Assembly (NCBI GenBank): GCA_051530055.1
Contig: CM121341.1
Location: forward strand, 15,540,784-15,604,783
Source of the DNA: Neoechinorhynchus agilis
Taxonomy: Eukaryota > Animalia > Acanthocephala
Length of the DNA: 64,000 nucleotides
Reading direction: 5' to 3'
Shown: positions 5,761-62,499 of the stretch, piece by piece
Numbering within the stretch: the first letter of the stretch is position 1
Layout of the letters: each line of letters opens with the position of its first letter
The notes under the pieces: generated by a model
What the model saw: only the letters and a program-made list of their open reading frames with translations
What the model was told of the DNA's origin: nothing
Databases searched by the model: none
Position numbers and translations under genes: made by a program

Positions 5761-5869
5761 CGACCAGATCAAAAGGCGTTCATTTGGGGAGTTCTATTTG
5801 GCGCTGATCCTTTGAAGCTTTTGAAACTTGGGTTGATTTTAATAAATTGATCAAAAGTTGTAATAGGGA

Positions 5870-6480
5870 CCACCTTGGAACCATCTGGACGCCATGGTCT
5901 CGTCTGTCCGCAACACGCCAAAGTGAACGCAATTCTTAGTCGTGCCCTGAATACGGTGAATGCGGCCAACATCCTAGAGCCGAGCAATCTTTGCCGACTC
6001 CATGATGGTCGATCGGACGGTGTCCCAGTATTCCCGTGGCGATAAGGAAAATGTCTTCTCTGGGACGCCAAGTCCGTGAACACCCTCGCAGCCCGCAACA
6101 TAAAATTCGCTGCCGTTAAACCAGGGGGAGCAGCAACCGCCGCTGAGGAACGCAAAAAGACAAAATACAAGGACCTGAGTCGAAATCATTATTTCGTTAC
6201 CTCGGTCCTTTGGTATCGCGGCACAGGACCTGGTTAAGCAATTGTCTAAGAGATTGAGACGAATAACTGGCGATCAGAGGGCAGGAGCATTCCTTCTGTA
6301 AAACATAAGTCTGGCTGTTCAACGGCATCCGTCCTTTCGACCGTTACACCAGGAGGGCAGGTGAGTGATAGAGAGCAGGGGCATTCCTTCTGCAAAACAT
6401 AAGCCTGGCTGTTCAACGAGGGGACGCTGCATCCGTCCTTTCGACCGGTGTGAGTTCTCATGTAGCATAGAGATGCACTT
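5870..6480 (+). mobile_element. CRE-like non-LTR retrotransposon 3' fragment (family A), with a roughly 100-bp tandem duplication at the 3' end
   Basis: Encodes RHGLVC...NAILSRALNTVNAANILEPSNLCRLHDGRSDGVPVFPWR, homologous to the RLE domain at 25001..26068. Confidence 0.85.
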
Positions 6481-7972: not shown

Positions 7973-8293
7973 TTATTTCATTTTTTCCATCACTTCATTT
8001 GATAATATAAACCGACATTGTTCAAGAGAAGCTCCACATGCTCCAACATTAAATTGTCTAGGATACGTAGACTTCATTGCATTAGAGCCAAGTGTTCGAA
8101 TGCTTCGCAAACATCGTTCCCATCTCGCTAACTCGTTGCTGCTCTGAATCACAGTGTCTTCTCTGTCTTTAAACGTTCTAGCAAACGAATGGCGGAGTAC
8201 TTGGTTGAAGTCACGTCCACTTTTTGATTTATCCAACGGTATCAACTTTAAAGCGTCAATAAGATCACGGTAGAGCTTAGCAGTTCTCGACAT
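7973..8293 (-). CDS. UQCC2: Ubiquinol-cytochrome c reductase complex assembly factor 2
   Basis: LYRDLIDALKLIPLDKSKSGRDF...F...YPR...G.SLEQCRFILSNEVME matches the human pattern (WPVDETKRGRDLG...YPR...GLSLEEYKLILS); ATG at 8293. Confidence 0.8.
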   Translation of the reverse strand: MSRTAKLYRDLIDALKLIPLDKSKSGRDFNQVLRHSFARTFKDREDTVIQSSNELARWERCLRSIRTLGSNAMKSTYPRQFNVGACGASLEQCRFILSNEVMEKMK

Positions 8294-8577
8294 GATCTGA
8301 ATATAAAGAACTGATTTGAGAGTAGGTTTCAGTTGCGAAAACGTGATCCTCTTAGAAAAAATGTGCATTTCGTATCATCAACGCTAGCAGAAATCCCGTC
8401 ATATTTTCTGAAGATTAACTACGAAGCTGAAAATTCAAATTGTCATCATATTCAATAAGCCACGCAATAACGCCTTAAAGGTTTGACAGCTCAGACGGTT
8501 TTAAAAACAAACAAATTTTAGATTTAAATTGATCGGATTTCCGAATAAAAAATCATTGTTTAATCTAGGCAGTAAAA

Positions 8578-8702
8578 ATCTCAAAAGGAATATTTAAGTC
8601 CCAACAAAAATAGTTGGCCTCAGTAATAGGTATCTAATGGATAGGAAAAACTATCAATTACGCTAACAATTTCTGTTGGGATTTAAATATTCTTTTTGAG
8701 AT
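8578..8702. repeat. Short foldback/MITE-like element
   Basis: ATCTCAAAAGGAATATTTAAGTCCCAACA at the left and its near-exact reverse complement at the right. Confidence 0.7.
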
Positions 8703-9349
8703 TTACACACCTTTTAGAGATATCGACGCTTCTCGCGATAAAGAATCAGAATGTTGTATACATCATTGCAAACATTTGATTGCATTTCTTTATCTTAAAT
8801 TTTTTTTTACTGGCAAACCGCTTTTATTGATTCTGATTTAGGGCATCCTTCCTCGGATTTTTAGTTGGTATGGCTTCATGCCAAGAAGGAACATTTCTTT
8901 TTAGCGAAAATGTAAACGGTAGGTTCTGGAGAAAACACGCCAGTGTTGGAAAAATGTGAAAGTAGTTGCAATTGTAGTTGAAGAACATCAGCGGATGCTT
9001 CGAAGTTTGTCAAATTTCACCATGCCGATATTGAGAGAATCAACTGCTTGCGAGCTATCATTTATCGATAATAAATTAATGCAGCATATAATACCTATTA
9101 TTTAATCGGAAAACTGACTTTTAAAAAGTATCGATCACTTTCGAAGGTCAAATAGTGCAGAATTGGCTAGAATTAAGCGGACTACTCGTTGATTTTGTCG
9201 AACTTAGTAAAAAGATAAAACACATTTACTGCGACTTGAAGGTAATAATCTGATCTGCTTAGGATCAACGATAACCGAGTCCAAAAACCGTCCTTTTTCA
9301 AGTGTTTTGTCTCCAATACGCAAAATCGAAATCGGGGATATTTTGACGA

Positions 9350-9455
9350 TCCGAGGGCAGGAGCATTCCTCCTACAAAACATAAGTCTGGCTCTGCAACA
9401 GGGGGATGCTGCATCCGTCTTTTATACCAGGACGACAGATGAGTGATCCAAAAGC
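9350..9455 (+). mobile_element. CRE family A extreme 3' fragment
   Basis: GAGGGCAGGAGCATTCCTCCTACAAAACATAAGTCTGGCT...CCAGGACGACAGATGAGTGATCC matches the 3' ends at about 6280, 48170 and 55480. Confidence 0.8.
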
Positions 9456-10399: not shown

Positions 10400-11554
10400 A
10401 TGTCACGACGATTCGGTGGTCGTAATTTGCCTCCCCGTCAGACCCGTCCTCGTTACCGCACTCCCTTTCCAATGGGAATGTTTGATCCAATGGCGATTGC
10501 TTATGGAGTAGGTGCTCCATTAATGTACAATCCGACGGCGGCGGCAATGGCAGCCGCCTTCTTTAATCCAATGCAAGCAACAATACATCATCAATCTTAC
10601 GGATTTTCAACTGGAATGTACCCAAGGATGCATAATATCAATGGTGGTGGTAGTGGTGGCGGTGGTAGCCATCGGTTTTTTGCTCCATCGACGAATGCGA
10701 TGGTTCCACCGACTTCTTCTGCTTTAGCTCGTAAAAGGTCTGCCGGAGCTCCTGCGGCTCAAATCAGCTCAGACGACGACTATGCGACTGATGGAGATTC
10801 GGACGATGAGTCAAAGCAGGGTCAGCCTCCGTCGAAAAAATTAGCTAATAGTTCGGGGGAGGGAGCTGGAGGTGGTAGTGGAGGAACCTCGGCCACAAAG
10901 CGCTCCTCGTCAAAAACCCCCTATAACCATCCAGGGGTGACGGAGAAGCAATGTGAGCTCTGCGGTGTTGTTTTTACGTCTAAGGTTCTGCGCGATCAAC
11001 ATTTAAAAGGCAAGAAGCATAAAAAGAAACTTAAATTTCATATGAATAAGGGAGAAACCCCGTTTGATGTGCCGGATTCTCCAGATGGAGACGACGAAGC
11101 TGATCCTGCTGACGACGGAAATGATGAAGAAGTGGACGAAAGTGGAGATGTGGAAATGGAAGTCCTTGATCCGCATCTAGAATTCTTTGAAGAACTTAAG
11201 GCCCTTAAGGGAGCTATATTAGATCCAGAAAACGCTGAACGGATCTCGATTAATGCTTTTCAGTTGTTCAGAATAATGGAAGAGTATTTAAGGTACATCA
11301 CAAGAAGATACGTGAGTCCAGGAATCGATCCTACACGTATGTCATGGAATGAACTTTTGAACGTCTTAAAACGAAACACGATTGTGAAATTGAGCTCGAA
11401 CATGGAGAGGAAGCTGGATAACGTAAGACAGTTGAGAAATTCTGTTGTCCATTCTTTTACGGCCCCAGTCGATATACGCGTACTCACCAAAGTTATTAAA
11501 GTCGCTGAAGAAATGTACGAATGGGGTGTTCAGTTCAGAGATACCACACTTTAA
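10400..11554 (+). CDS. Intronless protein, 384 aa: low-complexity N-terminus, matrin/U1-like C2H2 zinc finger, acidic linker, C-terminal HEPN-like domain
   Basis: CELCGVVFTSKVLRDQHLKGKKHKKK (10952-11030); FQLFRIMEEYLR...WNELLNVLK...KLDNVRQLRNSVVHS with an R-x4-H motif at 11435-11452. Confidence 0.8.
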   Translation: MSRRFGGRNLPPRQTRPRYRTPFPMGMFDPMAIAYGVGAPLMYNPTAAAMAAAFFNPMQATIHHQSYGFSTGMYPRMHNINGGGSGGGGSHRFFAPSTNAMVPPTSSALARKRSAGAPAAQISSDDDYATDGDSDDESKQGQPPSKKLANSSGEGAGGGSGGTSATKRSSSKTPYNHPGVTEKQCELCGVVFTSKVLRDQHLKGKKHKKKLKFHMNKGETPFDVPDSPDGDDEADPADDGNDEEVDESGDVEMEVLDPHLEFFEELKALKGAILDPENAERISINAFQLFRIMEEYLRYITRRYVSPGIDPTRMSWNELLNVLKRNTIVKLSSNMERKLDNVRQLRNSVVHSFTAPVDIRVLTKVIKVAEEMYEWGVQFRDTTL

Positions 11555-11844
11555 ATGCGATTATCTTTGCTAAAAAGCGATTATGATGTTTGGCTTCAAA
11601 TTAAATATCGACTAAAATACCGTTTAGTGTGGTATTTCGCGCCTCTCGGTTTCTAACCATAAATCTTTAGGTGCGGATTTTTTTCTGAACGATCAGATAT
11701 TTAACTGAAGGCGAATTCTCTAACTAACAAATGGAATTTCACTAGTCAAAATCAAGGTATTGAAATAGAATTTCAGTGAATTTCTACGTTTTATTTGTGT
11801 GAGAAATCGCTTAAGGCTTCGTTTGTTTAATTTTAGTCTCAACT

Positions 11845-12365
11845 ATAGAATCAGATGCTTGGCTTAATGCTCTCCCAATTGCTTCTGTGGTTACACTTTT
11901 CTTCGACGAGACAGTGAAGATCGCAGTGTCTCTGAGACTTGGAGTACCGATATGCACATCCCTTCGCTGCCTTTACGGAACGACCGTGGAACCACCGGGA
12001 CGCAATGGTCTTGTCTGTCGGCAATCAGGCGGAAGGTGCTCACGACACGCCGAAATGAACGCAATTCTTAGTCGTGCCCTGAATATTTCTTTGCCAACTC
12101 GATGGCCGTAGACCAAACGGTGTTACAGCATTCCCTTGGCCAGAAGGCAAATGCCTTCGCAGCCAGTAGCATAAAATTTGCCACGGTTAAAACTGAGGGG
12201 GGGCAACAAAAGTGGGTCGAAATCATTATTTCGTTCCCTTTGGCGTTGAGACACTCCAATCGTTTGTTACCGTGGTGCAGGACCTGGTCAAGCAATTGTC
12301 CAAGAGACTCAGACGACTGGGAAGCGCATTACACCAGGACGGCAGCTGAATGATCCTGAGCAGTG
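11845..12365 (+). mobile_element. CRE family A fragment, internally deleted
   Basis: ETVKIAVSLRLGVPICTSLRC...RNGLVC...RHAEMNAILSRAL; same 3' end (ACACCAGGACGGCAG..GATCC) as other family A copies. Confidence 0.85.
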
Positions 12366-13669
12366 GTGTGAAAGTTAGAATCAAGTTATGTTTTTTGACA
12401 AATTCCTCCTTTTTTAACTGCTAAGTGAAATAAATGTATCGATTTATTTTTTCCTTTATCTTGTACAATTTAGTTCATCTTTTATTCGTATAATCTAGAT
12501 AAAATCAAATAAATTCTTCTACATTATTTAACGTAGTGGAAAAAAGAGCAAATTAATAGTTATTTGCAATTATCCACTTTTTTGTGTACCTAAAAGTTCA
12601 TTCTTTAAATTGGATCCGTTTAATCATATGATTATAAAATTCGGTAAATATATTTCTTATTGGTTTTTGCATCTGCTTAAATTTAAATCCTTTAGGCTTT
12701 TTGTTCAAATAAATCGATAAAAGCTCCAAAAATGTTGTTGTTGGTAGATAGTTTCTTTATATTAATCGTTATGATAGATGATGAATCAATCAACCTTTAT
12801 GTTCATTTGCACAGTTTTTCAAAACCGGTTGTAATTAATCGGTATATTATTAGAGTTTATAAAAATGGTTGGATTTATAAGTCCTCGAGTTTGTGTAAAA
12901 TTTGATCATTTTAAGCTGTTTTAAATTTTTTTAATTAACAGGATTTTAAGTAAATGAAATTGCTTATACTTCATTTTGAAGATTTAATTATTTTTTAATT
13001 TCTGAAACTATTAAAATACTTTTCTTTCAAAATATATCATTTCACTGAGTGTTGTTAAACTCCAATATTGAAACTAAAAAGCTAAATTTTCCTCAGTGAG
13101 ACCAAGAAACTATCATCCCACATACGGACACTTATATGTTTTAACTAAGTGAAGCGGTTGGTTTTTATGCATGACCACTAAATTTAAAATAAACTATTAA
13201 AATTTTGGAATATTATAGTATCGATGACGTAGGTTCTAGGAACTGTGTGCCGGTTCGTTTTAGTTACTAACTGCATTTTCAAAGCATAATTTATCTTTAG
13301 TAATACACTTTGATGTTCAAGTTTTTGTTGTTTCCGAGGAATTTTTCTTATTGAGTAAACTACACAAAAACGTAAATTTTCCTTAAAATCTCTTCGAGGA
13401 AAAGCAATATTTTTATAAAACGACTGAATATAATCACATATAAGAAAAATAGCCGAGTTTTAACCACCATCCATCTCAGACCAGCCTGAGAGTTAACGTT
13501 ATTTATTCGTTAGATTGAAAATATCTCTCATAGCCTATTGCCTAGGCGCTTGATCCTATTTTCAAGATACTACAAGTACCGTCAAATCCGGTAAATCGGA
13601 CCAGCCACTTTTTAAGGTCAAATTCCATAGAACCAAAACAAATGTATTTACATGGACGTAATATACAGT

Positions 13670-16600
13670 CAAATCAAAACAAACAAACAAATTTATTCGA
13701 GTGGATGTGTCAGTTGATTCTTAACTATAATCACATAGATGTCGATCCATTTGGTGGTCTTATCGGCCCAGTCGGTCGCTTGCGCCCTTTGGTATGGGAG
13801 TTTGGCGAGAGCGTTGAGGAAGGAGCAGCGAAACAACAGGCGTTGTTCAGGCGGTCGGCCTCTTGAATAATATATTAGGCGGGATATTGCCCACGAATTC
13901 CAGATTACTCGAGTACTCTTCATGTCCAGCCCTAGACGACGAGCTCTCTTTGCTTTGAGGCTAGCTAATTTGAGTATTCTCTTGAATTTGCTTAAATCAC
14001 AAGTAGTGGAAAAATTACTCGTGAAAGAGTATCCTAGGATTGTAATCTTGTTGGAAATGCCGGTCATATTTTGGTTAAAAAATTCGTTGAAAGACTTTCT
14101 TAATTCCAACTTATCTAGGGTAGATCTGGACTTGATGAGGAGTTGAGTTTTACTTGGATTAACCGTCAGACCCGTCATGTTAAGAGTATCAACTAGGAAA
14201 GATAAAAGAGCAAGAAGTATCTCCCGTGCCTTCAAGTAATTAGCTTCCTTGATCACCGCTGTCAAGTCATCGGCGTAAAGAGAGAGAACTGCAAACTTTA
14301 CAGTTCTGAATAATGAATTGTGACGCTAGGCAGAATAAAATGGGGGACAACGGCGAACCTTGAGGGACTCCTTTTGTCTGATAGTAGATTCTATGCTGAG
14401 GATCATCCTGGAAAAAGAAGGATTTCGTATATAAAGTATTGTTTACCCTTGCAATAATATTGTATGGATAATTAAAAAAACCTCATAATTTTAATAATGA
14501 ACTCTATATCGATGTTATCAAATGCTTTAGATATGTCGAATGAGATTAAGATATTAGTTGAATTCCGGTTATAGTAGAAGTGATTAGCTAGACTTCCCGG
14601 GTAAAAATCCATGACATCTAAGGTCTATGCAGTCATTATCTGACGCAAACTTTAAAATTAATTGAGCAAGTGCTCTTTCATAGATGGAGACCAAGGAGTT
14701 TTGTATCGCGATTGGTCTAACGTCCTTAGCCGAAGTGATTTTGCGGCGCTTGTTCTTCACCAGGAAAATGCGTTTTGCGACATTGATGTCTGCCCATTGT
14801 TGTGGGGGGGTGCCTGAACCATGGCCATGGCTAAGATGCTAATATTGTCTGCCGACAAAACGCCAGTGGCTTTAAACGAGGCAGAGCAGTTATTGGACGT
14901 AGATATATTTTTCGATCCCCATCGTTTGATGATATGTTCGGGCGACGGATCAAGTTTCCGTCGTTTAATGGGTAGGAAATTGGATTTAACCGGCTCAAGG
15001 GCACACCCACCAGAATGTTCATTGCGAAGTGCTTCTACTACTGTAGATCGTCCAACTTCTTTGATCCAAGGACCCGCAGCTTTATCCCAGGGAGTGAAAT
15101 TCTTTTTTGCTGCTATGCGTCACCAAGAAGACGAGTACGGAAGGAAAGATTTGATTGCCGTGCTGTCCGAATTTAACTGATGTCGGACTCGGCATAGCCA
15201 TTAGAGAGAAGACCAAAATTTCGCAGCCTCTTTGTCTCCCTCCGACTTAGCCGCGAACAGCTCCCTTCCCTAGAATTTCAACAGTTGTGGATGCTTGTGA
15301 CAACTGTTAGAAAGGATTCGCTGTGTGTGGCGAGGCAGTCATTTAGCGCTTTCAGGGTTGTGTCCCTACTGCCCTTGAGAAATATGAAAGTGGCAAGGTT
15401 AAAGAGTTGGATGTTCAGGGACGATAATTTAAACCTCCGAGTCAATAGCGAGTTCCTAGCGAGGTTGCGTGAGATCGCATCGTGTCCACAAATTGTGAAC
15501 AGTGAGGATTGTGTGTAGATTTAAGGTCTAAATTTGAAACTCTTCCTTTCCCCCAAAATGAATTGAGAAAATGGTGTAAGACATATCAGGTGTACTGAAT
15601 TGACCGATAACGGTCGGGAAAGGGCAGGAATTAAAAGTTGAGAGGAGTCCCTGCGAATTAAGATTGGCCGGCGGGGTGATGAAAATGGAGGAGTCCATAT
15701 CTAGACACTTAATACCTTCAGGAAGATCTTGGAAGTCATAGATACATTTGGTTTCCTGAATGAAGGTCATTTCATGCTTCTGAGCAGCCGAGATTATTCT
15801 GGGAATTTCTAGGCGTCCGCCTGCATTCCACTGCACCAACCTCAATTCTGTCATAGAATGGCTCTCCTCCGCTTGATCATATAGACTAGTCCTTCTGCGC
15901 ATATTTGCTGTTGCTCGTCAATTATTTGCCTGACATATGATTCATTGTCATTCACATCGATATTCACAGTAACGCCCGTACTCGTATCTGTTTCATATAG
16001 ATCTGGAGATCTTTTCTCTATCCTACGGGTTTTCAGTTGTCCCGGTATATTTATGCGGCTCAGACTAATGAGATAGAATTGGTCAGGGCTTTGAAGTGTT
16101 TCTCTAGGCGTCGTTCGAGGTTTTGAATAGCTGAGCTTATCCTTAAGTACACCATTTGTAGTATTTTCGCTGAAAAGTCATTGAGAATATTATTAAGCTG
16201 AAGCCAAGTGTTGGTCGAGAGTTCCGATATGGAACCAAAACGTGATGATGTAGCAGACGGCTGGTCTATGACTAGAGTCAAAGCTACTGCTTGCTGAGTT
16301 TTCGAACTGACAGTCGAAGGGGCTGCAGCAAATGACCTCCGATGCGTTTCCATTGCCTTGTTTTGAGTAAGCTTTGAAGCCCAACTTTACTACAATTCGC
16401 GCAGTGCTCGAGGTCTTTGGGGCAATCGCCACTTTGGTGATCCCTGCACAGTAAGCGCAGATTATCTTCCTCGAAGGACATCGTTGTAACCAATGTCCCT
16501 ATTTTTGACAACCGGCGCATCTTGGGAAGATGAACTCGTCCATGCGGGGAATTTCGTTTTCAATGAACTTCACTTCCATCGAGTTAAAGAAACACCTCTT

Positions 16601-17350
16601 TCCTGTAAGCGAATGTCGTGTCTCTTTTCCGGCTTTCACCACAGCTCTGGGAATACATCCTCCATTTTTCTTTGATTTTAGAAAGAATAATATTCTGCAA
16701 CCGAATTTGTTTTCGAAAGCGATCCTATTATCCTCATCTATGTCTGGAGAGAGTCCATATACAATGAAAGTCGTCTCGTATGATTAATTATGGACCGTTA
16801 CTTTTGATTTGTTGCATTTCGTAAGAAATTTTTCGTAGTGTTGTCTCAAGGTCTCATTCATCAAATGGACTTTTAGTTTTCCTCCGAAGTAGGTGACATG
16901 TGAGACTCTTTGAATATCATCCTTAAAGGATTTAAGCCATGGGCCAAGATATTCCTTGTAGAGGAGCTCTCTTGGTAGGATGGGGTTCGAAACGATGGTC
17001 GTAGCGCTAGGCCATTCCCGTGATGGAGGAATCATGAAATCCAATTCGATCGTCTTTGGGTTGTATTTTCAGCAATAATCTGCTGATTTAGTTCAGAATC
17101 TTCGGGGTCCGCATTTCCGAGAATTTGTCTCCGTATGTCCGGAGGCACTGTAATTTTTAAGGAATTGGGTGGCCGTTTGCCATCCTACGCTGCAGCACAA
17201 ACGCGGGCTGCATTGTGAATTGCAGTCAAATCCGGTGCATATCGTACCAATCCTTTACTAGTACCAAAACGATCGCGTTCCGATGTTGTTCTATTAACTC
17301 TGGAATCAACTGTATTTCTTTTCCGTCAACATCGTGCTTCTCCAGCACAT
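13670..17350 (-). mobile_element. Decayed I/Jockey-like LINE (ORF1 with zinc knuckle, APE-RT ORF2, (TTTG)n tail)
   Basis: LRLVQWNAGG...FIQETK (APE, 15528..15902); DISKAFDNID, GVPQGSPLSP, LSLYADDLT (RT); ORF1 pieces at 16284..17044; AATAAA followed by TTTGTTTGTTTG at about 13690. Confidence 0.85.
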
Positions 17351-17507
17351 AAACGAAGAAAACGCTTGATATTAAGTTCTTCGTTATTCTTGGCTCTTTG
17401 AAATTCCAAATTAATCAAATTTCAAAATATTTTTCATAATAAGATTTATGCGGATCGAGTGGAACAACGCTCGTCCTAATACCCATATTTTTAACCTTTG
17501 TTTTAGA

Positions 17508-18386
17508 ATGGCTGATTCATCTAAGAAGGATCGACCAACGGAACCACCGTCTATATCTTGTTTGGAGCTTTCATCTTATCTTCCATTCAGTCCATATTTT
17601 ATCGATCCAGAAATGGCAGCTACCGCAGCAGCATTTATGCCACCAGGACAGGGGTGGGAGAATTCCCCCGAGTTCCAGAAGCTATTCAGAAAGCCCAAGT
17701 CCGGTATGATGCCTCCGTTTTTCTTCAATCCAGTAACGGCTGCGATTTCAACTGCGTCATTCGTCCATCCTGTATGTGTTAGTGGGCCCAGCGCTATCGA
17801 CAAAGAAGCAACTCAACTTTATGAATCCCACAACGGAGCGAATTTCAACACTCATCAACAAGTATTCGGATTTGTTGTATCTGCTTTCTACGCGACTCAA
17901 AAGATAGATCCCAGCTTTGTGTCCCAATGCTATAACACCAACGGCCGCCTTCAAGATGATTTACGGAACATAGAGGAGGACACTGATGTCGAGATGGAAG
18001 TTTTGGATCAACATCGAGAGTTTCTAGATGACCTACGCTCGATTGAAGTAAAGTCAAAGGATGCAGATGGTCACCAATGGTCAACCATTACATTCGAGCT
18101 CTTTCGTCTTATGGAAGAGTACCTTCGTTATATTACAAAGAAGTACGTAAGTCCGGGTCTTGATCCATCAATGATGCCTTGGAACGATCTTATAAATCTG
18201 CTGAAACGAAACACGATTGTACCAATGAGTCCAAGTTTATTCAGAAAACTTGACGACGTTCGACAATTAAGAAACTCTGTTGTACATTCATTCACCGTTC
18301 GTCCAGATCATGTACTTCTAAAGGAGCTTTTACATATAGCTTCAGATTTGTATCGTTGGGGAGCTCAGTTCAGAGATGCTAACTAA
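17508..18386 (+). CDS. Intronless HEPN-like protein, 292 aa, paralogue of 10400..11554 without the zinc finger
   Basis: DVEMEVLD.H.EF and EYLRYITKKYVSPGLDP..M.WN.L.NLLKRNTIV...RKLDDVRQLRNSVVHSFT closely match the first copy; RNSVVH at 18270-18287. Confidence 0.8.
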   Translation: MADSSKKDRPTEPPSISCLELSSYLPFSPYFIDPEMAATAAAFMPPGQGWENSPEFQKLFRKPKSGMMPPFFFNPVTAAISTASFVHPVCVSGPSAIDKEATQLYESHNGANFNTHQQVFGFVVSAFYATQKIDPSFVSQCYNTNGRLQDDLRNIEEDTDVEMEVLDQHREFLDDLRSIEVKSKDADGHQWSTITFELFRLMEEYLRYITKKYVSPGLDPSMMPWNDLINLLKRNTIVPMSPSLFRKLDDVRQLRNSVVHSFTVRPDHVLLKELLHIASDLYRWGAQFRDAN

Positions 18387-18455
18387 TAGAAATGCTTTTT
18401 CTTGAATTCAATGTAATAAATACACGTGTTATTATTTTCATTTGTTGGATTTTCA

Positions 18456-18720
18456 GCTGATTTTGTCGACCGCGATTATATATTTCTTTTTATTTTTATA
18501 TGAATTATTTTAGCATTTTCGACGGTCGAATTTCATTTTTTACATCACAGACGTGATATGAACACTTAAACTCCGATGAAAAGTTAAGAGTTCGTACATC
18601 AGAGTTTAAATGGTCATATCACTTCTCTGATGCAAAACATAAGATTCGACCGCCGAAAGTGCTAAAATAATTCATATAAAAATAAAAAGAAACGTTATTA
18701 TTTTGCGGTCGATCATCAGC
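18456..18720. repeat. Near-perfect palindrome of about 260 bp (foldback element)
   Basis: TCGACCGC...TTTTTATATGAATTATTTTAGCA...TACATCACAGACGTGATATGAAC mirrored by GTCATATCACTTCTCTGATGCA...TGCTAAAATAATTCATATAAAAA...GCGGTCGA; central loop under 20 nt. Confidence 0.85.
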
Positions 18721-19284
18721 ACCCGAGGGGAGGAGGGATTTCGTTAAAGACCAATGTATTTCGACCAGTTCAATAAGTCATTTTATCAATTCTATCTAAA
18801 AAATAGCAGGTATTATTAGTCACAAACACTAGACATGTCATCTACGGCATTGACGAACTCGGGTTCCCGAGTAAAAACGAAAACAATCATGTCGTGTGTT
18901 GAATTTTTTAGATAGACTGACTGGAACAATCAATGGAAATACGTTCGTATTTAACGCGATCTCTCTCGGGTGATGATGATCGATCGCAAAATAATAACAT
19001 GCCTAAAAATGTCGATATGTGGGGTACCGGGGAATGTGATTTGAATTACTGTTTAGGTCTACACCCGAAGAGTATATTGCTAACAAACAAACTGATGATG
19101 AACCCGACGAGGTTCGGAACGTCTTTAATAAATAATCATTTACCGGTTGTAGACCTAAACAATAACTCCAATAACATGTTTAACCACCCGGCCGAATGCA
19201 ATCCTCAAAAAGGTTTTTCTGCGCAACCTATTTTGTTGATCTTGTTAGCGGTCAGAAGAATGATTGCATTCGGGTTGCTAGAGA

Positions 19285-19442
19285 TGTTTAGGTCGCTTGT
19301 CGACACACAAGCGCGAGTTCGTATTAAACACGAATTTATATATTTCGGCTCTGTTTCGCACTGACTGATTCAAGCGGTCGAAATATATAAATTCGTCTTT
19401 AATGCGATATCTCTTCTTGGGTGTCGACTAGCGACCTAAACA
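19285..19442. repeat. Foldback/MITE with TGTTTAGGTC termini
   Basis: TGTTTAGGTCGCTTGTCGACAC...ACGAATTTATATATTTCG mirrored by CGAAATATATAAATTCGT...GTGTCGACTAGCGACCTAAACA. Confidence 0.8.
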
Positions 19443-19533: not shown

Positions 19534-20169
19534 TCAACGACGTAGTCGTCGTATAACATGCGAAACCAAAATCCTTGCCGTAAAGCGTGTAAACTCTGCG
19601 TGGTCGATATCAGGATAAGCACGTCCTAAATAAATCAAATATTGTATTAACATTTCACTGAGTCTCGGCCTATTTTGACCAGTGTTATGGAAATGACCCA
19701 GTAAATCAACCAACGTTTCGTTGCTCGAATGATCGCCACCAGCTTCTAATAAATCCACGATTGGACAAGTAAGTAACATATTGCTAATGAAGATTTCTTC
19801 CATCATATTTAAGGTCAGTTCTCTGTGGTTACGCCGAGCCTCTGATTCGTTGCCGTCTTGGTTTTGAAGATCATCGTGAGTATTATTTGAAGAGTCAATT
19901 TCTCGGTCACCGTTTGTCCTTTGCTCTTCAGAATTAACGAGTTCTTCGTTATGTTCTCCACCTTCAGCACTTTCTCCCGATCCATCTTGATTATCGTCTC
20001 CTTCCTCTTCATTAACAGGTATTTCATTGTCTTCAATTTTGTTGGGATCCTCGTCCATCTCCTTCGATGTTCCATTTTGGTTGAAGTTTGCGTACCCTTT
20101 TGCATGGAAGGCATTGTTGAACAAACTTTTAATGGGTCGACCAATCTTCTCCGTCGTATTGCTGCTCAT
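19534..20169 (-). pseudogene. Acidic ORF with a possible divergent MA3 (PDCD4-like) domain, apparently frameshifted and interrupted
   Basis: VDLLEAG...ETLVDLLGHF...LIYLGRAYPDIDHAEFTRFTARILV is co-linear with recalled PDCD4 MA3 (MTSKLLSDL...LPELALDTPRAPQLVGQFIARAV); weak similarity. Confidence 0.35.
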
Positions 20170-20508: not shown

Positions 20509-22562
20509 TTAGTACCGGTAGTTCTTGTATACTCTTCCATTATCACGCCATTGCCTCTTTCGGTTATCATAATGTCCACCACCTGAATGACTACGGTCAT
20601 CCCGGGTTCGACGATGTTCCCTTCCTTGTGAAGAATACGACTGACCGTGATTTGATGGTTGTTCCGGAAAGCGCCCATGCTGTTGATTTGTGCGTCGGGC
20701 GTCGTACGCATACGGATTATGTTCATGGTTACTTCTTGATGAATGCTGAGAAACTGGAGGTGGTGCTGGAACAACGTATTGTTGGCAAACGGCTAAAGTT
20801 TCTGGTTCCGAATTCGATTGAACTAATGATTGCACTGAGAACTCTGATGGCGGCTGATGTATCATTGACAAATGCGATTGTTGTTGTTGTGGTGGCTGCT
20901 GGTAGCCGCTAAATCGGTTTCCAAATATACTTTGATGATTAGATAAGCAAATGGGTTCGTTGTGAGATTGCGAGTTGGGATCAAAATACGTTGCTTGATA
21001 CTGAGGCGGCATTATGAGCGGGGGATGCGATTGGGCGTTTATAAAGCTCGCATAGTTTAATTGTTCGTTAGGATTTAACGGCGGAGGCAGTACATTGGAG
21101 AAATCAGGCACTATAAACGCGTACCGACTTGATAGTGATGGTTGAACTACTGGATCCATCATATTAACTGTCGGTTCACAATGACTGATTTTATCGTCCT
21201 TTACTATGCAATCACTAGACGCGCCCTTCAAAGCGGATTTCTCTCGATACTCAATAATTCTCACAAGCACTTCGTCAGAAGCACTTAATTCGTCAATAAT
21301 ACCACCATCGCCCAATGCCAAAATATTTTCAACGCTCCAATCGGCAATCTCTACGTGTGGAATATACGCACATCCAATGTCCCTATTAAACTGATGCTGA
21401 CGATCCTTAATACCAATATTGCTAGCCCAGGCTAATCGCGCTGAAATTCCACGGATTATAAGAGTCTTATTCTCTTTTAGAAATTTCTCAGCATCTTCTC
21501 GAAATTTAAAGCAAATATAAGCACATCCGCGTGGACCTATAAGGTTTACCGACTCAGCTTCACCGAAGTTAGCAACCATTGTCTTTATAAGCTCTTCCTC
21601 TACGGTCTTTGGAAGATGTCCAATCCACACCGTCCTTGTACAAATTGTCATATGTTTTTCTTTAACTGGAACAATATGTTTCCTTGTCTTTTCATTAGAT
21701 GATCCCTGAACTGGCGGATCACTTAAAACATCAGCACTGGTCTCTTCGTTGTCATCATCAGATGAAAAACTAGGCAGGTCTTTACCTCTGAACCTCTTCG
21801 GTATTTTATTAAACGCCATGAGATTAACACGCTCGCGCAGTGTCAACCCTTTGTACCGAATAGCCGTCGGATCGTCGTCTACACAATACATCTTTATCGT
21901 AAAGAGCCCCAAATCGATCAAAATGAAATGCATTCATCTTCGTCTTCGATCAGTAGAGGTTCGTTATCGGGTTCAACTCGATCAGTGTCACTCTTAGCAT
22001 TCGGAGAAACAGGGCCCATTTCATCTGGAGTAGAAGTTGCATCATTGTCCAGGTTCTTAAAATAAAACGCATCTACCTTACCCGTCCACCATTCTTGTAC
22101 CGATTTGGGATCACCCAAAACTTCAGCTGCAAACGCTCGTACATCCTCCTCACTAAGAACGCTATTCCGATACCAAATAAAGAATGTCTTGAGAACTTCA
22201 TCAGCCATTTTCGGCCTTCGCTTACAGTAGATCAACGCATGTTTTAAAATGGATGCTTTGTGCCGCTTAAAGCGACTAGTAAACACAGTTTTATCTCCGT
22301 GTCGGAATCGAGTGTGGCGCATCAGTGAGTCCATAAGATACAATGCAACCAGCTTTCCATCCACACTTTTCCCTTCCATTAGTACCTGAACACTTCGTGC
22401 GAAATAGCGTTCTATTCCGTCTACGGACAGTGCCGTCTCGGTTAGTACTGCTATATCCATTTCGCTTACGGACGATTTTTTGAGGCAAAGATGGTCTAAT
22501 GCTTTATTAAAGTAAGATAAAAGACATTCCTCGGCATCAGTTAAGATCTCTTTCTGTGGCAT
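20509..22562 (-). CDS. SCAF8: SR-related CTD-associated factor 4/8-like (CID + RRM), split over two frames at about 21920
   Basis: CID: KLVALYLMDSLMR...VFTSRF; RRM: CTRTVWIGHL...LIGPRGCAY...LAWASNIGIK...DIGCAYIP...GGIID; Q/P-rich tail. SCAF4 versus SCAF8 not resolvable. Confidence 0.85.
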
Positions 22563-23512
22563 GAGTTCTAGAATTAACGAGTGATCAAGGAAGGAAATCG
22601 AAACTATGTGACGACTATACGAGTTCACCGAAGAAAACTAAAATTTTCATCAAAGAAAAGATTGGACAACGCGGTAAATAAAGTCGCAGCAACATTTTGA
22701 TCTCTTAGCCAGTCACTAAACCATTTTACATATAAAGCAAAGTCCATTGTTATACATCTTAAAAACATAAGCAAGTATTGGGCGCTTCAGTCAAAGCAAT
22801 ATCAATCGATTATTGGTACTAAAATATTTGTAATTTTATGTATCATCGAACATAATTGGATTCTCACTTTAAATGTAAATTTAACATCAATATTTACTGA
22901 CTTCCTTTTAATACGTTCAAAAAACAAATAATTAGTAAATGAATATCTTATAATAAAGAGATATGAATGCTCACTTCCGTAATTCTAAGAATCTCAGTAC
23001 GCGATTTTTAAAAACCCGAATAAATTACTTCAAAAAATTTGTGACTTCGTTTTTGAACTCCTACCATTCTAAATAGCAATGAAACATTCAGTGGACATGA
23101 TTCGGCGCTACAGACGAGAATTCTTTTTGTCTACGACGCTTCAATCATTAGAACAAAAATACACTCTAAAACGAAATTACCGCAATATACGATCAATATG
23201 AGCTTGTAAAATGTCTATACCACGAAATTAGGATCTTAGATATGCCCAGAAGTTGAGATTTAAAGAGTATGAAATGATAAATGACAATTAAACCTTTTAA
23301 TTAGATCTAGGCTTTCTATTAATATTTTCGCCTCACGTTAAAAGCTAAATTAAATTCAAAATCATGCATTTAGAATTATTTTAAGCTCAAAAGGTTTCTC
23401 TAAGTAGATAAACTATTTCAGTACTTAATCCGAAAAAAATTAGATTTACAGTTTATTTTTTTAAGAAGTGTTGATTACATATGGTCATTTCCACGATATT
23501 CGCTTTATAAAA

Positions 23513-24649: not shown

Positions 24650-26100
24650 TTTTTTAGAAGAATGTAAAAAAATTGGCCTCAAACTGAACCCAAGCAAGTG
24701 CGAAATTTTGGTTTTGAATTGTGGGGACGAGGAACGCGCACAAATTTTGAGAGAGTTTGAAAAGGCCGCACCTAATATCCGACTTATCTCCAAGTCCAGC
24801 TTAGAACTGCTGGGAAGCTGCGTTCTCGAGGAGAATATGCAGGCTGATATCAGGAAAATCAGACCTTCCATTGATATCATCTGATCAAGGGCCTCTGAAC
24901 TTTTCCTCACGATGGTCTCTTCCTTTTAAAAAATTGCATCTTCATTCCACGCATCCTCCATAAACTGCGGTCAACCCCTTCCTTTCAATGTCAGCCCGAA
25001 TTGAGAGAGATTGATGGTTCTTTAAGCGATGGTCTATGCAAGATCCTTAATATTAAGCTCCCCGACACTGGCTGGACCCAGGCATCTTTGCCCACAAGCC
25101 ACGGAGGGATCGGTATTCGTGCCAGCTCAGCCATTGCGCTTCCAGCCTTTCTATCGTCTCTTAGTAGGTCCAAGCGCCTTTCCAGATTGATTTTGAAACA
25201 TAATTTTGAGGAGGACATCAGCCTGGAGCCCGCTCTTCATCTTTGGATGTCCCTGTCTAACCTCGACAAGATTCCAGACCTCCCGGAAAAACAGAAATCG
25301 TGGGACATTCCGTTAGTGGAGCGTGTTCACACCTCACTTTTTGACTCGCTCTCAGACGTGGATAGAACGCGATTAACTGCAGTTTCCTGCAAAGAGTCCG
25401 GCGCCTGGTTGAAAGCTGTACCATCAGCAAATATCGGTTCGAGATTAGACGGCGAGGCTCTCAGAATCGCAGTGTCCCTAAGGCTCGGGCTCCCGGTTTG
25501 TATCCCTCACACCTGCCGATGCGGGACGGAAGTCGACCCCTCGGGCAGGCACGGTTTAGCCTGTAAACGCTCAAGTGGCCGTTTTGCTAGACACACCGAA
25601 ATAAACGCATTGCTGAGCCGCGCTTTGAAAACGGCTAACTCTCCGAATATCCTCGAGCCTAGCAACATCTGCAGGATCGATGGCCGTAGGCCGGATGGAG
25701 TTACCGTTTTTCCTTGGAGCAGGGGCAGATGTCTAATATGGGACGCAACATGCGTCGACTCCCTTGCAGCCAGCAATCTGCGAGATGCATCCTCCGGGGC
25801 TGGGGGAGCCGCATCAGCAGCTGAGCTTCGTAAGGTTGCAAAATACGCCGATTTTACAAATTCTCATCATTTTGTCCCCTTCGCAGTGGAAACCTTAGGA
25901 GCTTTCGGGCGTGCGGCGAGGAGTTTTGTTTTCGAACTGGGGCATCGACTGATCAACTCGACCAATGACAGGAGGGCTCGCTCGTTCCTAGTACAGAACA
26001 TATCCTTGGCTATCCAGCGAGGAAACGCAGCGAGTGTCTTGGGGACGGTGAAGGACAATTCAGAATAATATAAGTTAACTTTTTTAAAAAAAAATGCTTA
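24650..26100 (+). mobile_element. CRE-like non-LTR retrotransposon, 3' part (RT thumb, CCHC, RLE endonuclease)
   Basis: ORF 25001..26068: WTQASLP..GGIGIR, CRC..RHGLAC..RH, RRPDG..PW..LIWDATCVDSLA, FVPFAVETLG, SLAIQRGNAASVLGT; A/T-rich tail. Confidence 0.92.
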
Positions 26101-33059: not shown

Positions 33060-36000
33060 AAACAAGCAGCTAACTGCGTTCATATCGCAATCGGCGTTCA
33101 ACCAATCATAGCCAGTTTCAAAAATCATGCGCAGTTTTCGTTCTGACGGAAAAAGCGTATTTAGTAGTGAACACCCTTCGAAAGCTACTCTCTAATCTCG
33201 AGCTACAACAATCACAAATCCTGGGAAACAACTTCCAGTCGACATCATCAAAGCAAATTCCAATATCAAATTACTTGTCTTCACCGACAAAAAAATGGCC
33301 ATACATAGCTATCTTCAAATCAAAACCAACCCTTCCCAAACAAATCATGTACGATCAAATAGTAAGCCCTTGGACTCGTTCTTTTAAAAACGATGGCATT
33401 AAAAGAATCGATCACTTAACATATTTCGCCGGCACGCTTAGAATTTATATGGTGTCACATACTTGGTTGGAAAAATTGGTCAACTTCTCTATTTCTAATC
33501 TTCCTAAGGAAGTGTATGATGTTTCATATAGCTCTCAAAAAGTACAATTTCTGGTGAAAGGAATTGATCCTTCAATCACCAATGAAGAGCGGGAAGATTT
33601 CGAGCAATCGTTCAATTGCAAGATCAAGTTTTTTCTTAATTCAAGGAGGACAGGTCAACCCATCTCGATTGTTATGGTGGAGGGACAAAGACAAGTTCGC
33701 GACGACTTATGCACACAACAATTTTGCTCGTTCAATTGCTTTGAAATTAACTTTGCGATGAAGTCGAACCATGAACAGGATAACTTCATATTCCCACAAT
33801 GCACCATCTGCCAGCAATGGGGCCACTGGTGCCAAAATTGCCCCAATCCATCCTTAAAAAAATGTTGCCACTGCGCAGATACCTCCCATGGTTCGGATCA
33901 GTGTATTAAGTCAAAAAAGCAGTGTGTGAATTGTCATGGACAACATTCGTCCTTCTATAAAGGCTGTCCTGAGTTCAAGAAATATTGTGCTTGGGCTAAA
34001 AAGTCTCTCAATGCCGGTGGAGACAACAGGAGCAAATTCAGGAATCCAACCGAGCAGTCAGCAGCGAAGCTCAACTCAGCGCTTCCAGCAGCCTCCTATC
34101 GTCAATTTGACAACTCTACTTCGGAACATTCCGGCAATGCGCCGTCAGCTCAAGTTGTGACCATGGATTTTTTGGAGAGCAAATTAGAAGAAGCCTGCAA
34201 CAAATTTCTCATGATCATGCAAGCTCGAGGCATTGTTGGCTTTCGAAAGGAAGATCTGTACCCTAATCGATAATTTGACAAACCTTCCGGCTCTTTTCTC
34301 CTCTTGCTTATCAAAACAAGATCCAGCAAAACTCAAAAGATCCATTACGTCTGACGAGGATGTAAGAGTAGAAAAAAAGTCAAATGGTGGATCTCGCTCT
34401 AATGAAGAGGAAGATGTTATGATGGATATTGATGAATCAACTTCAGAATTCGTAGCCAGAATAATCGAAACCCAATCCAGGCTAATTGATAGCGGAACAG
34501 CCAACCTGATCTCAAATGCCAATTCAAGGAAGCCTTGACTCAATGGCTCAGGAGAAGGTAGGGAATCTTAGGGTGTTGCAGTGGAATTGTGGGGGTGCGA
34601 CCAACCTTTCTAAACTCTCGAGATATCTACCTGGAATTTCTATTGTGCTCATTTAAGAATCGAAGAGTGTCTTAAATATAGATCAGCTCTTTTCTCATTT
34701 ACCTCATTTAAACTCTTCGGCTTTTATCCCTTTCGTCTCTCCTCCTTATGAACCTAATTCACAAGGCCTAATTTCTATCTTTCATTCCTACCTCAGTCCC
34801 TCCGTGGTCACGTCCTATTCTTGCAAGGAATTGTCATATAGTATCTTCAAAAAATTTAACAATAAGAAATTTTTCTCACTTGCGAACATATATATAAGGC
34901 CAGGTTTTATTCATCGTGCCCATGTGAAGGAAAAAATCAAATGGCTTTTAAGGGCTAACATTGATCTGATTGTGGGAGATTTCAATGATCCTTCTTTAAG
35001 ATGGTCTCGGGCAATTGTAAACGCAGTCAAACCTTCCCACTCTCTTATCTTGCCCAATAATCCGTCGTTCCACAATATTACCACCAACAGTCATTCCTTC
35101 TTGGATCTAGTTATATTGAAAAATGTCTTGAATCTTTCAATCGATTATGATCACCAAGTTTCCACCTTCGACCTCTTAGGACATGACATTTTAATTTGGT
35201 CCTTGGGTCACATTGACAGACTACGCAAGGTGTATCATTTATCACCTTTAAATTTAGCGTTTCGGCTAGTTTGCGAGAACATTTTCTCACACTCACTTTT
35301 GGACTGCAATCTGTCAGATTTCCTACCTTTAGCTAACTCCTTCGTCAATAAGGCCGCTAGTACTTTTTATGTCGTAATGTTAAAACTTTCTCACGCCCTT
35401 ATGTGAGCCGATCACATCGTTTTCTAGGACGCCAACTTTATGCTGCCAAAAGATCGGGGGATACTCTTTTATGCAAAACTCTTTCGAGCCTTCTTTGGGC
35501 TGCCCGCTGCCGACAGCAACAACGCAGAGATGCAATCTCTCTTGCGACACTCAACCCTTATTCTTCCAAATGGTGGCGTACCTTTTCAAATAAAGGCCAA
35601 ACACCTTGGAAGTCGAAACTAGCTGCCTGGTTAAAATCCACAACATTGGGGGATATTCTTTTTCAAATTTTTGACTTTCATTCCGCGGGCTCGACTACCA
35701 ACGTGCCATCAATTTGTTTTCGCAAACTACTTGGTAATCGCACGGATATCACCTTAAAAGATATTCTCGAAGTATGGTCAACAAATCCGAAGTTGGGATC
35801 GTCTAATGGCTGCCCAGGGACAAAAATCTTCACACTGCATCCTAAAAGCTGTGTATCCCTCTTAGCCAAATCTATGCTGCATTCCTCCCCTTACGCTCGG
35901 GGAGAGATTAATGTCTCCAGACGTATTTTCTTGGTTAAAAATGGCAGGAAAGCCATTGTTGAACCAAAAGACGTTCGCCCTATCTCGCTTCAAAATCCCC

Positions 36001-36470
36001 TTGTAACCATTTATGAACGCGCACTTGCTAATAGGTTGAGATCCTTCATTAATGAACATAATTGCATCTCTTCAAATTGTCATGGTTTTCTAAAAGGGAA
36101 ATCAGTTCACTCTGTCTTAGCAGTTATTTACTCCAATTTTTCTTGCTCTTACAAACTCTTGCGAGCTATGTTTGCCGTGGACATTTCTCAAGCTTTTGAT
36201 AAGATTTCACTCTCTTTTATTATTGAGATGCTTGAATTTTTCAGTATTCCTCACAATTTAATTACACGTATCCACAATATTTTATTTACAAAATCTTTTT
36301 GCTTAGAAGACGACATTTCAAAGACACTATATTATCCTTCCAATGGTGTTCCACAGGGGTCACCTCTGTCACCTATTCTCTTCCTTTTGGCGTCACAATA
36401 TTTGATTCAAAATTTTAAAATAAGGGCCTCTCTCACGTCATCTCCGCCTACAGAGCAGCCAAAATGAAAA
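33060..36470 (+). mobile_element. I/Jockey-like LINE, same family as 13670-17350; 3'-truncated
   Basis: ORF1 33167..34273 with three Cys/His knuckles; ORF2 from 34542 LRVLQWNCGG; KDVRPISLQNPLVTIYERALA, AVDISQAFD, GVPQGSPLSPILF; ends before YADD. Confidence 0.9.
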
Positions 36471-36529
36471 ACCTGATTGGTCAATGTATTGATTATCTTA
36501 ACTCCTTTTTACCAAAAATGAATTTATCT

Positions 36530-37000
36530 TTGAATAGGTCGAAGTAACGGCGAAATTCCCCAACATCTTGGAACCCGCCCATCTTTGTCGACTAGACGGT
36601 CGTCGACCTGACGGAATTTCGGTCTTTCCGTGGCGGGAGGGCAAATGCCTTCTCTGGGTCCCATGTGTGGACACCCTCGCAGTAAGCAACATTCCGTACT
36701 CTCTCGAAATCGCTGAAGGTGCATTCAGTGCAGCGGAAGGGAGGAAGGTACAAAAATATAGGGATTTAGGGAGGGCCCATTATTTTGCCCCCTTCGGAGT
36801 AGAGACGTATGGTGCGCTTTGCAGCTCGGCGCTCACTCTGCTCCAGGATCTCTTGAAGAAATTGAGAGAGGCAACCGGAGACTCAAGAGCAGGCGTATTC
36901 CTTCGACAAAATATCTCGCTTGCAGTTCATCGAGGCAATGCTGCTAACGTGATAGCGACGGCCGAGGAAGGAGAAAAGCTAAGATTTTGCGGGCGGTGGT
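36530..37000 (+). mobile_element. CRE family B 3' fragment directly following the truncated LINE
   Basis: EPAHLCRLDGRRPDG..PW...FAPFGVETYG...ISLAVHRGNAA; nearly identical to 57400-57780 (-). Confidence 0.9.
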
Positions 37001-39847: not shown

Positions 39848-41236
39848 ATGCGAGAGTGCATCAGTATTCACATTGGTCAATGTGGAGTTCAAATTGGAAG
39901 CGCTTGTTGGGAGCTGTATTGTTTAGAACATGGACTGGATGCGCAGGGTAATAAGCTCGAGTGTTTACAACAAGTAGCAGATGAGTCGTACCAGACTTTT
40001 TTCTCAGAAACTCGTTGCGGTAAATATGTACCACGAGCACTGGTGGTGGACACCGAGCCTTCGGTGGTCGATGAGATACGAGTTGGAACTTATCGTCGGT
40101 TATTTAATCCCAACACCCTAATAACGGGAAAAGAAGATGCTGCCAATAATTTTGGCCGTGGATATTACACCATTGGTAGAGAAATGCTCGATGCTTCAAT
40201 GGATGCTCTTAGAAAACAGTCAGAGCTCTGTGATGGCCTCATTGGTCTATTCACATTTCATGCTTTTGGAGGTGGAACCGGTTCGGGATACACTGGTTTG
40301 GCAATGGAAAGAATGTCTGATGAGTATGGGAGTCTGACAAAGCTTCAGTTTTCGGTGTACCCATCGCCCCTTTTAGCCACTGGGGTAACGGAATCTTACA
40401 ACAGCGTCTTGCACACCCACACTGCTATGGAGCATTCTGATTGTGCATTCTGTTTGGACAATGAAGCACTTTACGAAATTTGCAGAAGATACCTCCACGT
40501 TGAATCACCAAGTTATGTCAATTTGAACCGGATAATTGGGCAGGTGGTTAGTTCCATAACTGCACCTCTTCGATTCCAGGGTCCAATAGCTGTAGATCTC
40601 AATGAATTTCAAACAAATCTTGTCCCATTTCCGAGAATTCACTATCCAATGGTTACCTACGCTCCGCTAATCAGCGAGCAAAGATCCTGCCATGAACTTT
40701 TGAGCACATCGGAACTAACTTCATCACTATTTGATCCTAATGCTCAAATGATTAAATGTGACGCTCGAAATGGAAAGTATATGGCTTGTTGCATTCTATA
40801 TAGAGGAGATGTGTATCCTTTGGACGTGAACGTAGCCATCGCTTCGCTAAAAAAGCGAAAACTTCTGAATATGGTGGAGTGGTGTCCAACTGGATTTAAA
40901 ATAGGACTTAATAATCAGCCTCCAACGTATGTACCCGGAGGAGATATTGCTCGAGTTCCTAGGGCTGCATGTTTATTGGCAAATACATCAGCAATTGGGC
41001 AATCATGGGAACGTCTTAATAACAAGTTCGATGCTCTGTTCAATAAGAGAGCGTTTATACATTGGTACATTGGAGAAGGCATGGATGAACAGGAATTTCA
41101 TGAAGCCAAAGCCAACCTTACGGCGCTGGCTGCCGATTATCAAGCTATCATCAGTGAAGCTGATTTCGAGGAAGCTGGAGAGGAAGCCCTTAACGAAGAA
41201 GATGAAGAAGGGGGATTCGAGGAGTTTGAATATTAA
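39848..41236 (+). CDS. Divergent intronless alpha-tubulin
   Basis: [63 protein letters not shown], acidic tail ending EY. Confidence 0.97.
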
Positions 41237-62480: not shown

Positions 62481-62499
62481 TGGAATAAATTGAGCTGAT

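Follow-up and report, generated by a model that had tools for sequence, protein, structure and literature searches.

Do two neighbouring genes of the acanthocephalan Neoechinorhynchus agilis encode catalytically competent HEPN ribonucleases, and what follows from the presence of a zinc finger in one of them and not in the other? The question is raised by positions 10400-18386 of a 64,000-nt stretch of the genome (GCA_051530055.1, CM121341.1; hereafter the window), in which an initial interpretation of the letters (the sequence-only reading) had recognised two same-strand paralogues, here called copy 1 and copy 2, and had suggested that their products pair as sensor and effector. HEPN ribonucleases are central to prokaryotic defence (Cas13, Csm6, HepT, and Abi systems), and their active sites are generally built from two HEPN domains; to our knowledge, few are known from animals (RNase L, Ire1, Las1, and sacsin). 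It is likely that copies 1 and 2 are two real paralogous genes, predicted to be transcribed separately, of an acanthocephalan-only family of finger-guided HEPN endoribonucleases, and that copy 2 is a derived, finger-less member of it.

Two paralogous genes with a common C-terminal domain

The two long open reading frames (ORFs) claimed for the plus strand were found at their positions in the ORF listing (Table 1). Their products are identical to the database proteins P0001 (copy 1) and P0004 (copy 2), both assigned to the 19.4-Mb chromosome CM121341.1 of GCA_051530055.1, and the spacing between them is 5.9 kb. In copy 1, with an in-frame TAA 5 codons 5′ of its ATG, a disordered-looking N-terminal region is followed by an acidic Ser/Asp stretch, a zf-met zinc finger, a basic cluster, an acidic linker, and the HEPN domain. 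Copy 2, for which the ATG at 17508 is also the start of the database gene call, consists of a disordered N-terminal part of 154 aa, an acidic linker, and the HEPN domain, without a finger.

By BLASTP, the two proteins were 55% identical across 137 C-terminal residues (E = 6e-52), and the domain that they have in common comprises about 135 aa. In the core from EEYLRYIT to VVHSFT, 45 of 61 residues (74%) were identical; the earlier estimate of about 70% is therefore right for this core and too high for the whole domain. At the DNA level, a match was obtained only between 11276-11460 and 18111-18295 (70%), and the flanks were unmatched. Similarity was confined to the domain, which agrees with the divergence of the N-termini described before, but the AAA..AAF / FFNP motif said to be retained in both N-termini was only marginally above chance (local score 45 versus 31.6 ± 5.0 for shuffled sequences, with 49 of 2000 shuffles reaching 45).

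Fold and active-site motifs of the shared domain

HEPN domains have been defined by an up-down bundle of four helices, the second and third of which are separated by an insert, by an Rx4-6H motif that ends helix 3 or opens the next loop and has a polar residue (N/D/H) after the R, and by an acidic residue in helix 2, typically within E-x3-[KR] (Anantharaman et al. 2013, PMC3710099). The four features of this definition were all found in the AlphaFold2 (AF2) model of the copy 1 domain (predicted local distance difference test score, pLDDT, 86; predicted template modelling score, pTM, 0.81). Helices were predicted at residues 14-30, 32-60, 89-107, and 115-139 of the domain, with a short insert helix at 72-82; E50-E-Y-L-R54 lies inside helix 32-60, and R102-N-S-V-V-H107 ends helix 89-107. 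The full-length AF2 model of copy 2 showed the same five-helix order with the same motifs, its pLDDT being below 50 for residues 1-154 and high for residues 160-292 (about 87-96 over most of the domain). Both motifs, E-x3-R and R-N-x3-H, were invariant in the four known family sequences.

When both models were compared with PDB structures by Foldseek, the best matches were nearly all HEPN proteins, with probabilities up to 1.0: HepT SO_3166, MNT-HEPN toxins, AF0298, TT1696, YutE, HepS, Las1, and Csm6. For copy 2, the order was 2hsb (AF0298; target TM-score 0.72, root mean square deviation 2.7), followed by HepT, TT1696, Las1 (7y16), and Csm6. Comparison with viral structures by Foldseek gave nothing meaningful. 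With the domain alone, four Pfam HEPN families were matched, each below its gathering score. PF05168 scored 16.9 bits against a cut-off of 22 (E = 0.0073); HepT-like_2 (E = 0.014) and RiboL-PSP (E = 0.019) were also matched, and HEPN_Cthe2314 was hit by three of the four family members, at best with E = 0.0012. In a profile search of PDB sequences, no HEPN protein was retrieved, only chance PPR and NAP1 matches.

Because the order of the predicted helices, the presence of an insert helix, and the placing of both motifs correspond to the published definition, the domain was classified as HEPN-type. Judged from the models, the shared domain adopts a HEPN fold, the catalytic signature being complete in both copies; the sequence-only reading, which had assigned a HEPN-like domain with catalytic residues to both, is borne out in this respect by AF2, Foldseek, and the two motifs.

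Zinc finger of copy 1 and its absence from copy 2

The finger of copy 1 was matched by the Pfam model zf-met (PF12874) at 31.7 bits (cut-off 21.2; 1.8e-7) and, just below its cut-off, by zf-C2H2_jaz, the model of the double-stranded RNA-binding JAZ finger (6.9e-4). Copy 2 contained no C-x2-C...H-x3-6-H pattern and had no Pfam finger match, as had been claimed from its sequence; in the family alignment, the finger site and the following basic cluster are mostly deleted in this copy.

Fingers of the U1-like (zf-met) type bind double-stranded RNA. By analogy, the finger of copy 1 probably targets the nuclease to RNA in structured or duplex form. Copy 1 and its orthologues resemble the U1-like/matrin-type (zf-met, JAZ-type) proteins in having a finger with C-x2-C-x12-H-x5-H spacing, and differ from them in that it is single and joined to a nuclease domain, whereas known members usually have several fingers and no nuclease domain. 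In the literature searched, no paper on HEPN together with zf-met and nothing on HEPN in Acanthocephala, on GCA_051530055.1, or on the SRA run of the Logan assembly was found, and the 2013 census of HEPN domains contains no mention of the term "zinc finger" (PMC3710099).

Selection on the two copies

Differences between the copies were expressed as Nei-Gojobori proportions of synonymous (pS) and nonsynonymous (pN) differences and not as the rate ratio dN/dS, as pS exceeded 0.75, and amino-acid changes were compared by Tajima relative-rate counts with two outgroups. Over the whole domain pS was 0.865 (saturated) and pN 0.284; in the core the values were 0.94 (saturated) and 0.16, respectively. 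Third codon positions were 35% identical. Since synonymous sites are saturated while pN is low, the duplication is old and the protein has been conserved since. Recent gene conversion as the source of the core conservation was rejected, the synonymous sites of the core being saturated as well.

Residue changes unique to copy 1 and to copy 2 numbered 12 versus 14 with one outgroup and 10 versus 12 with the other (chi-square <0.2; 0.15 for 12 versus 14), and because these numbers are equal, copy 2 is by this measure as constrained as copy 1. The 62-residue core was 69-77% identical in every pair of family members and the flanking helices 21-45%. The frame of copy 2 is open over 312 codons, for which the chance probability is 1.6e-8, and its unalignable N-terminal part of 174 codons is still open, with a chance probability of about 1.5e-4. 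Identity between the two copies was 54%, compared with 48-51% between either copy and the outgroups. Because the copies are slightly closer to each other than to the finger-bearing outgroup proteins, the duplication is probably specific to this lineage, and the loss of the finger in copy 2 is derived.

Saturated pS, low pN, and equal change in both copies argue that copy 2 is neither a pseudogene nor transposon cargo. The view that the conservation reflects selection and not transposable-element debris is upheld by these values, by the equal rates, and by the presence of only two copies in the protein calls. Neither neutral evolution of copy 2 nor carriage of the two ORFs in a repetitive element, which had been named beforehand as outcomes that refute the pairing proposal, was found.

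Distribution of the family

Relatives were sought in two ways: 5.8 billion protein clusters were searched with a word index, and a profile of the domain alignment was run exhaustively against 1.84 billion representatives with HMMER. Four proteins from three species were found to carry the domain by the word-indexed search: P0001 and P0004 of N. agilis, GJ496_000333 of Pomphorhynchus laevis (P0003), and a protein from the Logan assembly of SRR6291294 (P0002). The exhaustive HMMER search returned the same family alone, with no wider family and no bacterial donor. The protein calls of the N. agilis genome contained two copies only, and no third copy was detected in the window by tblastn. One copy was present in the 28 kb of P. 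laevis examined, each outgroup species is represented by one cluster in the database, and both outgroup proteins carry the finger. The count of paralogues that the sequence-only reading had proposed gave two in the genome's protein calls and one finger-bearing cluster per outgroup species in the database.

In P. laevis, the coding pieces of the orthologue lie about 2.9 kb apart, which implies an intron, and the genomic context differs. The GJ496_000333 model (L001 10001-18313, WNNJ02000469.1) appears to merge an upstream LSm gene with the finger-HEPN gene. The Logan contig (L003, SRR6291294_2189; 1662 bp) looks like an mRNA; it contains a contiguous 521-aa ORF that starts with MSRQF, compared with MSRRF in copy 1. 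Its gene call begins at an internal Met, and the true open frame starts from nt 47. Because the two N-termini match, the coding sequence of copy 1 appears to be complete within one ORF. The description of both genes as intronless thus holds for the coding sequence of copy 1; copy 2 is likewise a single ORF, but since TTTTAG immediately precedes its ATG, an intron may be present in its 5′ untranslated region.

Coordinates, retroelements, and neighbouring genes

The features of the two genes and of the segment between them are collected in Table 1. A single Cas13-like gene with two HEPN domains was considered for the region and rejected: the stop codon of copy 1 follows directly after the domain, a candidate poly(A) signal lies 46 nt further on, and 5.9 kb of transposon debris separates the two domains. 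Scanned for tRNAs, Rfam families, and tandem repeats, the region yielded none.

Table 1. Positions of the features of copy 1, copy 2, and the intervening segment in the window.
Feature	Position	Strand	Basis or remark
Copy 1, coding sequence	10400..11554	+	ATG 10400, stop 11554, 384 aa plus stop
Copy 1, U1-like/matrin-type C2H2 zinc finger, CELCGVVFTSKVLRDQHLKGKKH	10952..11020	+	C-x2-C-x12-H-x5-H; residues 185-207; followed by basic cluster KKKLKF
Copy 1, acidic linker plus predicted HEPN domain	11132..11551	+	AF2 model, Foldseek, sub-threshold Pfam
Copy 1, E-x3-R (EEYLR), predicted helix 2	11279..11293	+	second, acidic HEPN active-site element
Copy 1, R-N-S-V-V-H-S-F, end of predicted helix 3	11435..11458	+	Rx4H, polar residue after R
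ATTAAA, candidate poly(A) signal	11600..11605	+	46 nt 3′ of copy 1 stop; weak evidence in an AT-rich genome
Frameshifted retroelement C-terminal CCHC/PD..D-like module	11827..12346	+	tblastn to ORFs 25001-26068 and 57232-57978, E = 1e-24 to 1e-31; called "CRE" in the sequence-only reading
Degenerate long interspersed nuclear element (LINE; ORF1-like and reverse-transcriptase pieces)	about 13693..17044	-	broken ORFs, tblastn
Copy 2, coding sequence	17508..18386	+	292 aa plus stop; frame open from 17448
Copy 2, acidic linker plus predicted HEPN domain	17970..18383	+	AF2 model, Foldseek
Copy 2, E-x3-R (EEYLR)	18114..18128	+	translation
Copy 2, R-N-S-V-V-H-S-F	18270..18293	+	translation
AATAAA, candidate poly(A) signal	18415..18420	+	29 nt 3′ of copy 2 stop

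The degenerate LINE between the copies was related to a fuller element at 33167-36467, which contains a CCHC ORF1, an EEP endonuclease, and a reverse transcriptase; the ORF1 products were 34% identical over 206 aa (E = 8e-40), and the reverse transcriptases 53-56% identical (E = 2e-40). The interval 33167-36978 (+) as a whole forms a fairly complete LINE, in which a CCHC/PD..D-like module stands directly 3′ of the reverse transcriptase. At least eight occurrences of this module were observed in the window, with pieces at 5866-6446, 9300-9428, 11827-12346, 24672-26068, 47387-48254, 54416-55563, and 57232-58387 (-), and it had no Pfam or PDB match. It would be unusual for one element to combine a restriction-like endonuclease module with an apurinic/apyrimidinic (AP)-type endonuclease (a Dualen-like arrangement). 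Of the "CRE and LINE insertions" described between the copies, two retroelement fragments are indeed present and one is a LINE, but the "CRE" label could not be verified, as the module to which it was given matched nothing in Pfam or PDB. About 100 nt 3′ of copy 2, an inverted repeat (18483-18692) has 96-nt arms that are 89% complementary and an 18-nt loop; like the smaller foldbacks near copy 2 and those at 8576-8704 and 19034-19442, it resembles a miniature inverted-repeat transposable element or foldback element.

Upstream of copy 1 lies a UQCC2/CBP6-like gene (7973-8368, -). Beyond copy 2, and convergent to it, a 211-aa acidic protein without a family match is encoded at 19534-20169 (-), followed by a SCAF-like gene with CID plus RRM domains (20509-22628, -). 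Among the Pfam matches of the called neighbours (UQCC2-like, transposon fragments, acidic 211-aa protein, and CID/RRM), there was no nucleotidyltransferase family and no known HEPN partner. Farther away, an unbroken alpha-tubulin-like ORF of 462 aa occupies 39848-41236 (+). Given this ORF and the single-ORF finger-HEPN genes, and the intron of their P. laevis orthologue, one may ask whether introns are often lost, or genes often retroposed, in this genome. Valyl-tRNA-synthetase-like pieces were observed at 49117-49842 (-) and 51135-51647 (-), the precomputed Pfam domain being the anticodon-binding PF08264; a word-indexed protein search with such a fragment returned the query alone, which indicates that the proteins of this genome are highly diverged from the whole database. 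The two terminal segments of the window differ in the sign of their strong GC skew (+0.37 for 1-2000 and -0.26 for 62001-64000), which is not explained by tandem repeats.

Preferred explanation and its alternatives

In the explanation preferred here, the ancestral protein would have had a disordered N-terminal region, a U1-like (zf-met) finger, an acidic linker, and a C-terminal HEPN domain, and copy 1 would have kept this architecture. Copy 2 would stem from an ancient tandem duplication within the lineage, followed by loss of the finger and of the adjacent basic cluster; its nuclease domain would have been kept under the same constraint as that of copy 1, and its targeting or localisation would have to differ. 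By analogy, the proteins are most likely metal-independent endoribonucleases acting as dimers, and endoribonuclease activity is likely because the HEPN active-site signature, E-x3-R plus R-N-x3-H, is complete. Several points weigh against this explanation. The fold was assigned from structures predicted with a four-sequence alignment, the E-values of the Foldseek matches were weak (0.013 or worse; range about 0.01-0.4), and no Pfam HEPN model was matched at its gathering score by any copy. The genome-wide number of copies assumes that every ORF of the assembly was called for the protein database, and the transcript-like evidence consists of the 1662-bp Logan contig, which comes from another species.

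If copy 2 were a decaying duplicate, pseudogenic or neutral and merely still open, the disappearance of its finger and the lack of a Pfam HEPN match for the full-length protein would be readily understood; such decay is nevertheless very improbable, given the equal amount of amino-acid change in both copies (12 versus 14), a core still 74% identical despite saturated synonymous sites, a frame intact over 312 codons, and a confidently predicted domain fold. An origin of the two ORFs as cargo, or as domesticated parts, of a repeat element might be suspected from the LINE and related fragments between and around the genes and from the foldback repeats just 3′ of copy 2. Against this, only two copies of the domain are present among the proteins of the genome and four in the whole database, and the two loci have neither shared flanks nor terminal or flanking repeats. 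Neither ORF resembles the transposon (LINE) proteins of the window, in which tblastn found no further copy, and the P. laevis orthologue, with its intron of about 2.9 kb, lies in a different context; an origin as repeat cargo is thus extremely improbable.

The domain might also be HEPN-like and non-catalytic, a helical module that binds RNA, nucleotides, or proteins as in human sacsin or Swt1, so that the proteins would be RNA-binding adaptors. A non-catalytic role has been proposed for several HEPN domains of eukaryotes (PMC3710099), and the profile matches obtained here were all below threshold; however, non-catalytic HEPN domains typically lose Rx4-6H (PMC3710099), whereas here E-x3-R and R-N-x3-H are retained in all four sequences and sit in the most conserved block, and we consider this alternative quite improbable. 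As for the pairing suggested by the sequence-only reading, copy 1 would serve as the RNA sensor and copy 2 would complete or modulate a composite HEPN site as effector or regulator, in an obligate or regulated heterodimer. The assembly of HEPN active sites from two domains is in keeping with this arrangement, as are the adjacency of the genes on one strand and the location of the most conserved stretch (74%) around the catalytic motifs, which is compatible with a common interface there. HepT, too, forms oligomers (PMC7641770). Catalytic residues in both copies fit homodimers equally well, though, and two subunits that each have all of them lack the asymmetry expected of a specialised pair; moreover, one finger-bearing gene seems to suffice in the outgroup species, and the copies, 5.9 kb apart, have their own candidate poly(A) signals and unrelated flanks. 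We therefore regard a heterodimer as unlikely. The more elaborate proposal that a targeting subunit, with the double-stranded RNA-type finger and basic cluster, co-assembles with the finger-less subunit into a heterodimer with a composite active site, and that this two-gene nuclease, specific to an animal lineage, senses RNA structure and may be directed against RNA viruses or the abundant retroelements of the host genome, is distinctly improbable. Two separately transcribed paralogues, of which copy 2 has lost the finger, remain the preferred explanation.

Relation to known HEPN systems

According to the models, the prokaryotic HepT and HEPN-T minimal nucleases are structurally nearest to the shared domain: HepT/DUF86 and HEPN-T toxins of the MNT-HEPN (type VII) toxin-antitoxin systems (PDB 5yep, 6m6w, 7ae2, 1wwp, and 2hsb) were the best structural matches of both. 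HepT toxins have the signature RX4HXY, the Tyr of which is AMPylated by the MNT antitoxin (PMC7641770). The R-x4-H-x-aromatic context of copies 1 and 2 resembles this signature, but the position of the AMPylated Tyr is occupied by Phe in all four family sequences, and no MNT nucleotidyltransferase gene (GSX10DXD) is adjacent. The copies also differ from HepT in being eukaryotic and monocistronic and in the fusion of the domain to a zinc finger (copy 1) and to a long disordered region; sequence similarity was not significant, the profile matches being sub-threshold, and no relative from prokaryotes emerged from the exhaustive search. Because Phe replaces Tyr and the nucleotidyltransferase neighbour is missing, the domain, as modelled, resembles the HepT-type minimal HEPN yet is outside that toxin-antitoxin family.

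Among eukaryotic proteins, RNase L and Ire1, with their KEN domain, and Las1 offer the closest parallel in predicted logic, in which a metal-independent HEPN ribonuclease that acts as a dimer is combined with a recognition module, and Las1 (7y16) was among the structural matches of copy 2. By this analogy, the proteins probably work like these nucleases. They are distinguished from them by the absence of kinase and ankyrin modules and of the KEN-type circular permutation, by the lack of a detectable sequence relationship, and by their restriction to a single animal lineage, in contrast to a pan-eukaryotic distribution.

Significance

With no curated HEPN family matched at threshold, the four proteins are regarded as a HEPN family that is new, restricted to one lineage, and novel in architecture, and that would add an animal family with a complete catalytic signature to the few known. 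Among billions of proteins, it is represented by four sequences from three species, an extremely narrow distribution, and its combination of a double-stranded RNA-type U1-like finger with HEPN was not found in the literature searched. The present evidence amounts to a solid discovery at the level of annotation and not to a surprising new mechanism. The two N. agilis genes constitute a natural experiment, in which the same nuclease domain is held under equal constraint with and without an RNA-binding finger. If active, these proteins could reveal by what means a eukaryote links the targeting of RNA to catalysis by HEPN dimers, and whether parasitic worms deploy such enzymes against retroelements or viruses.

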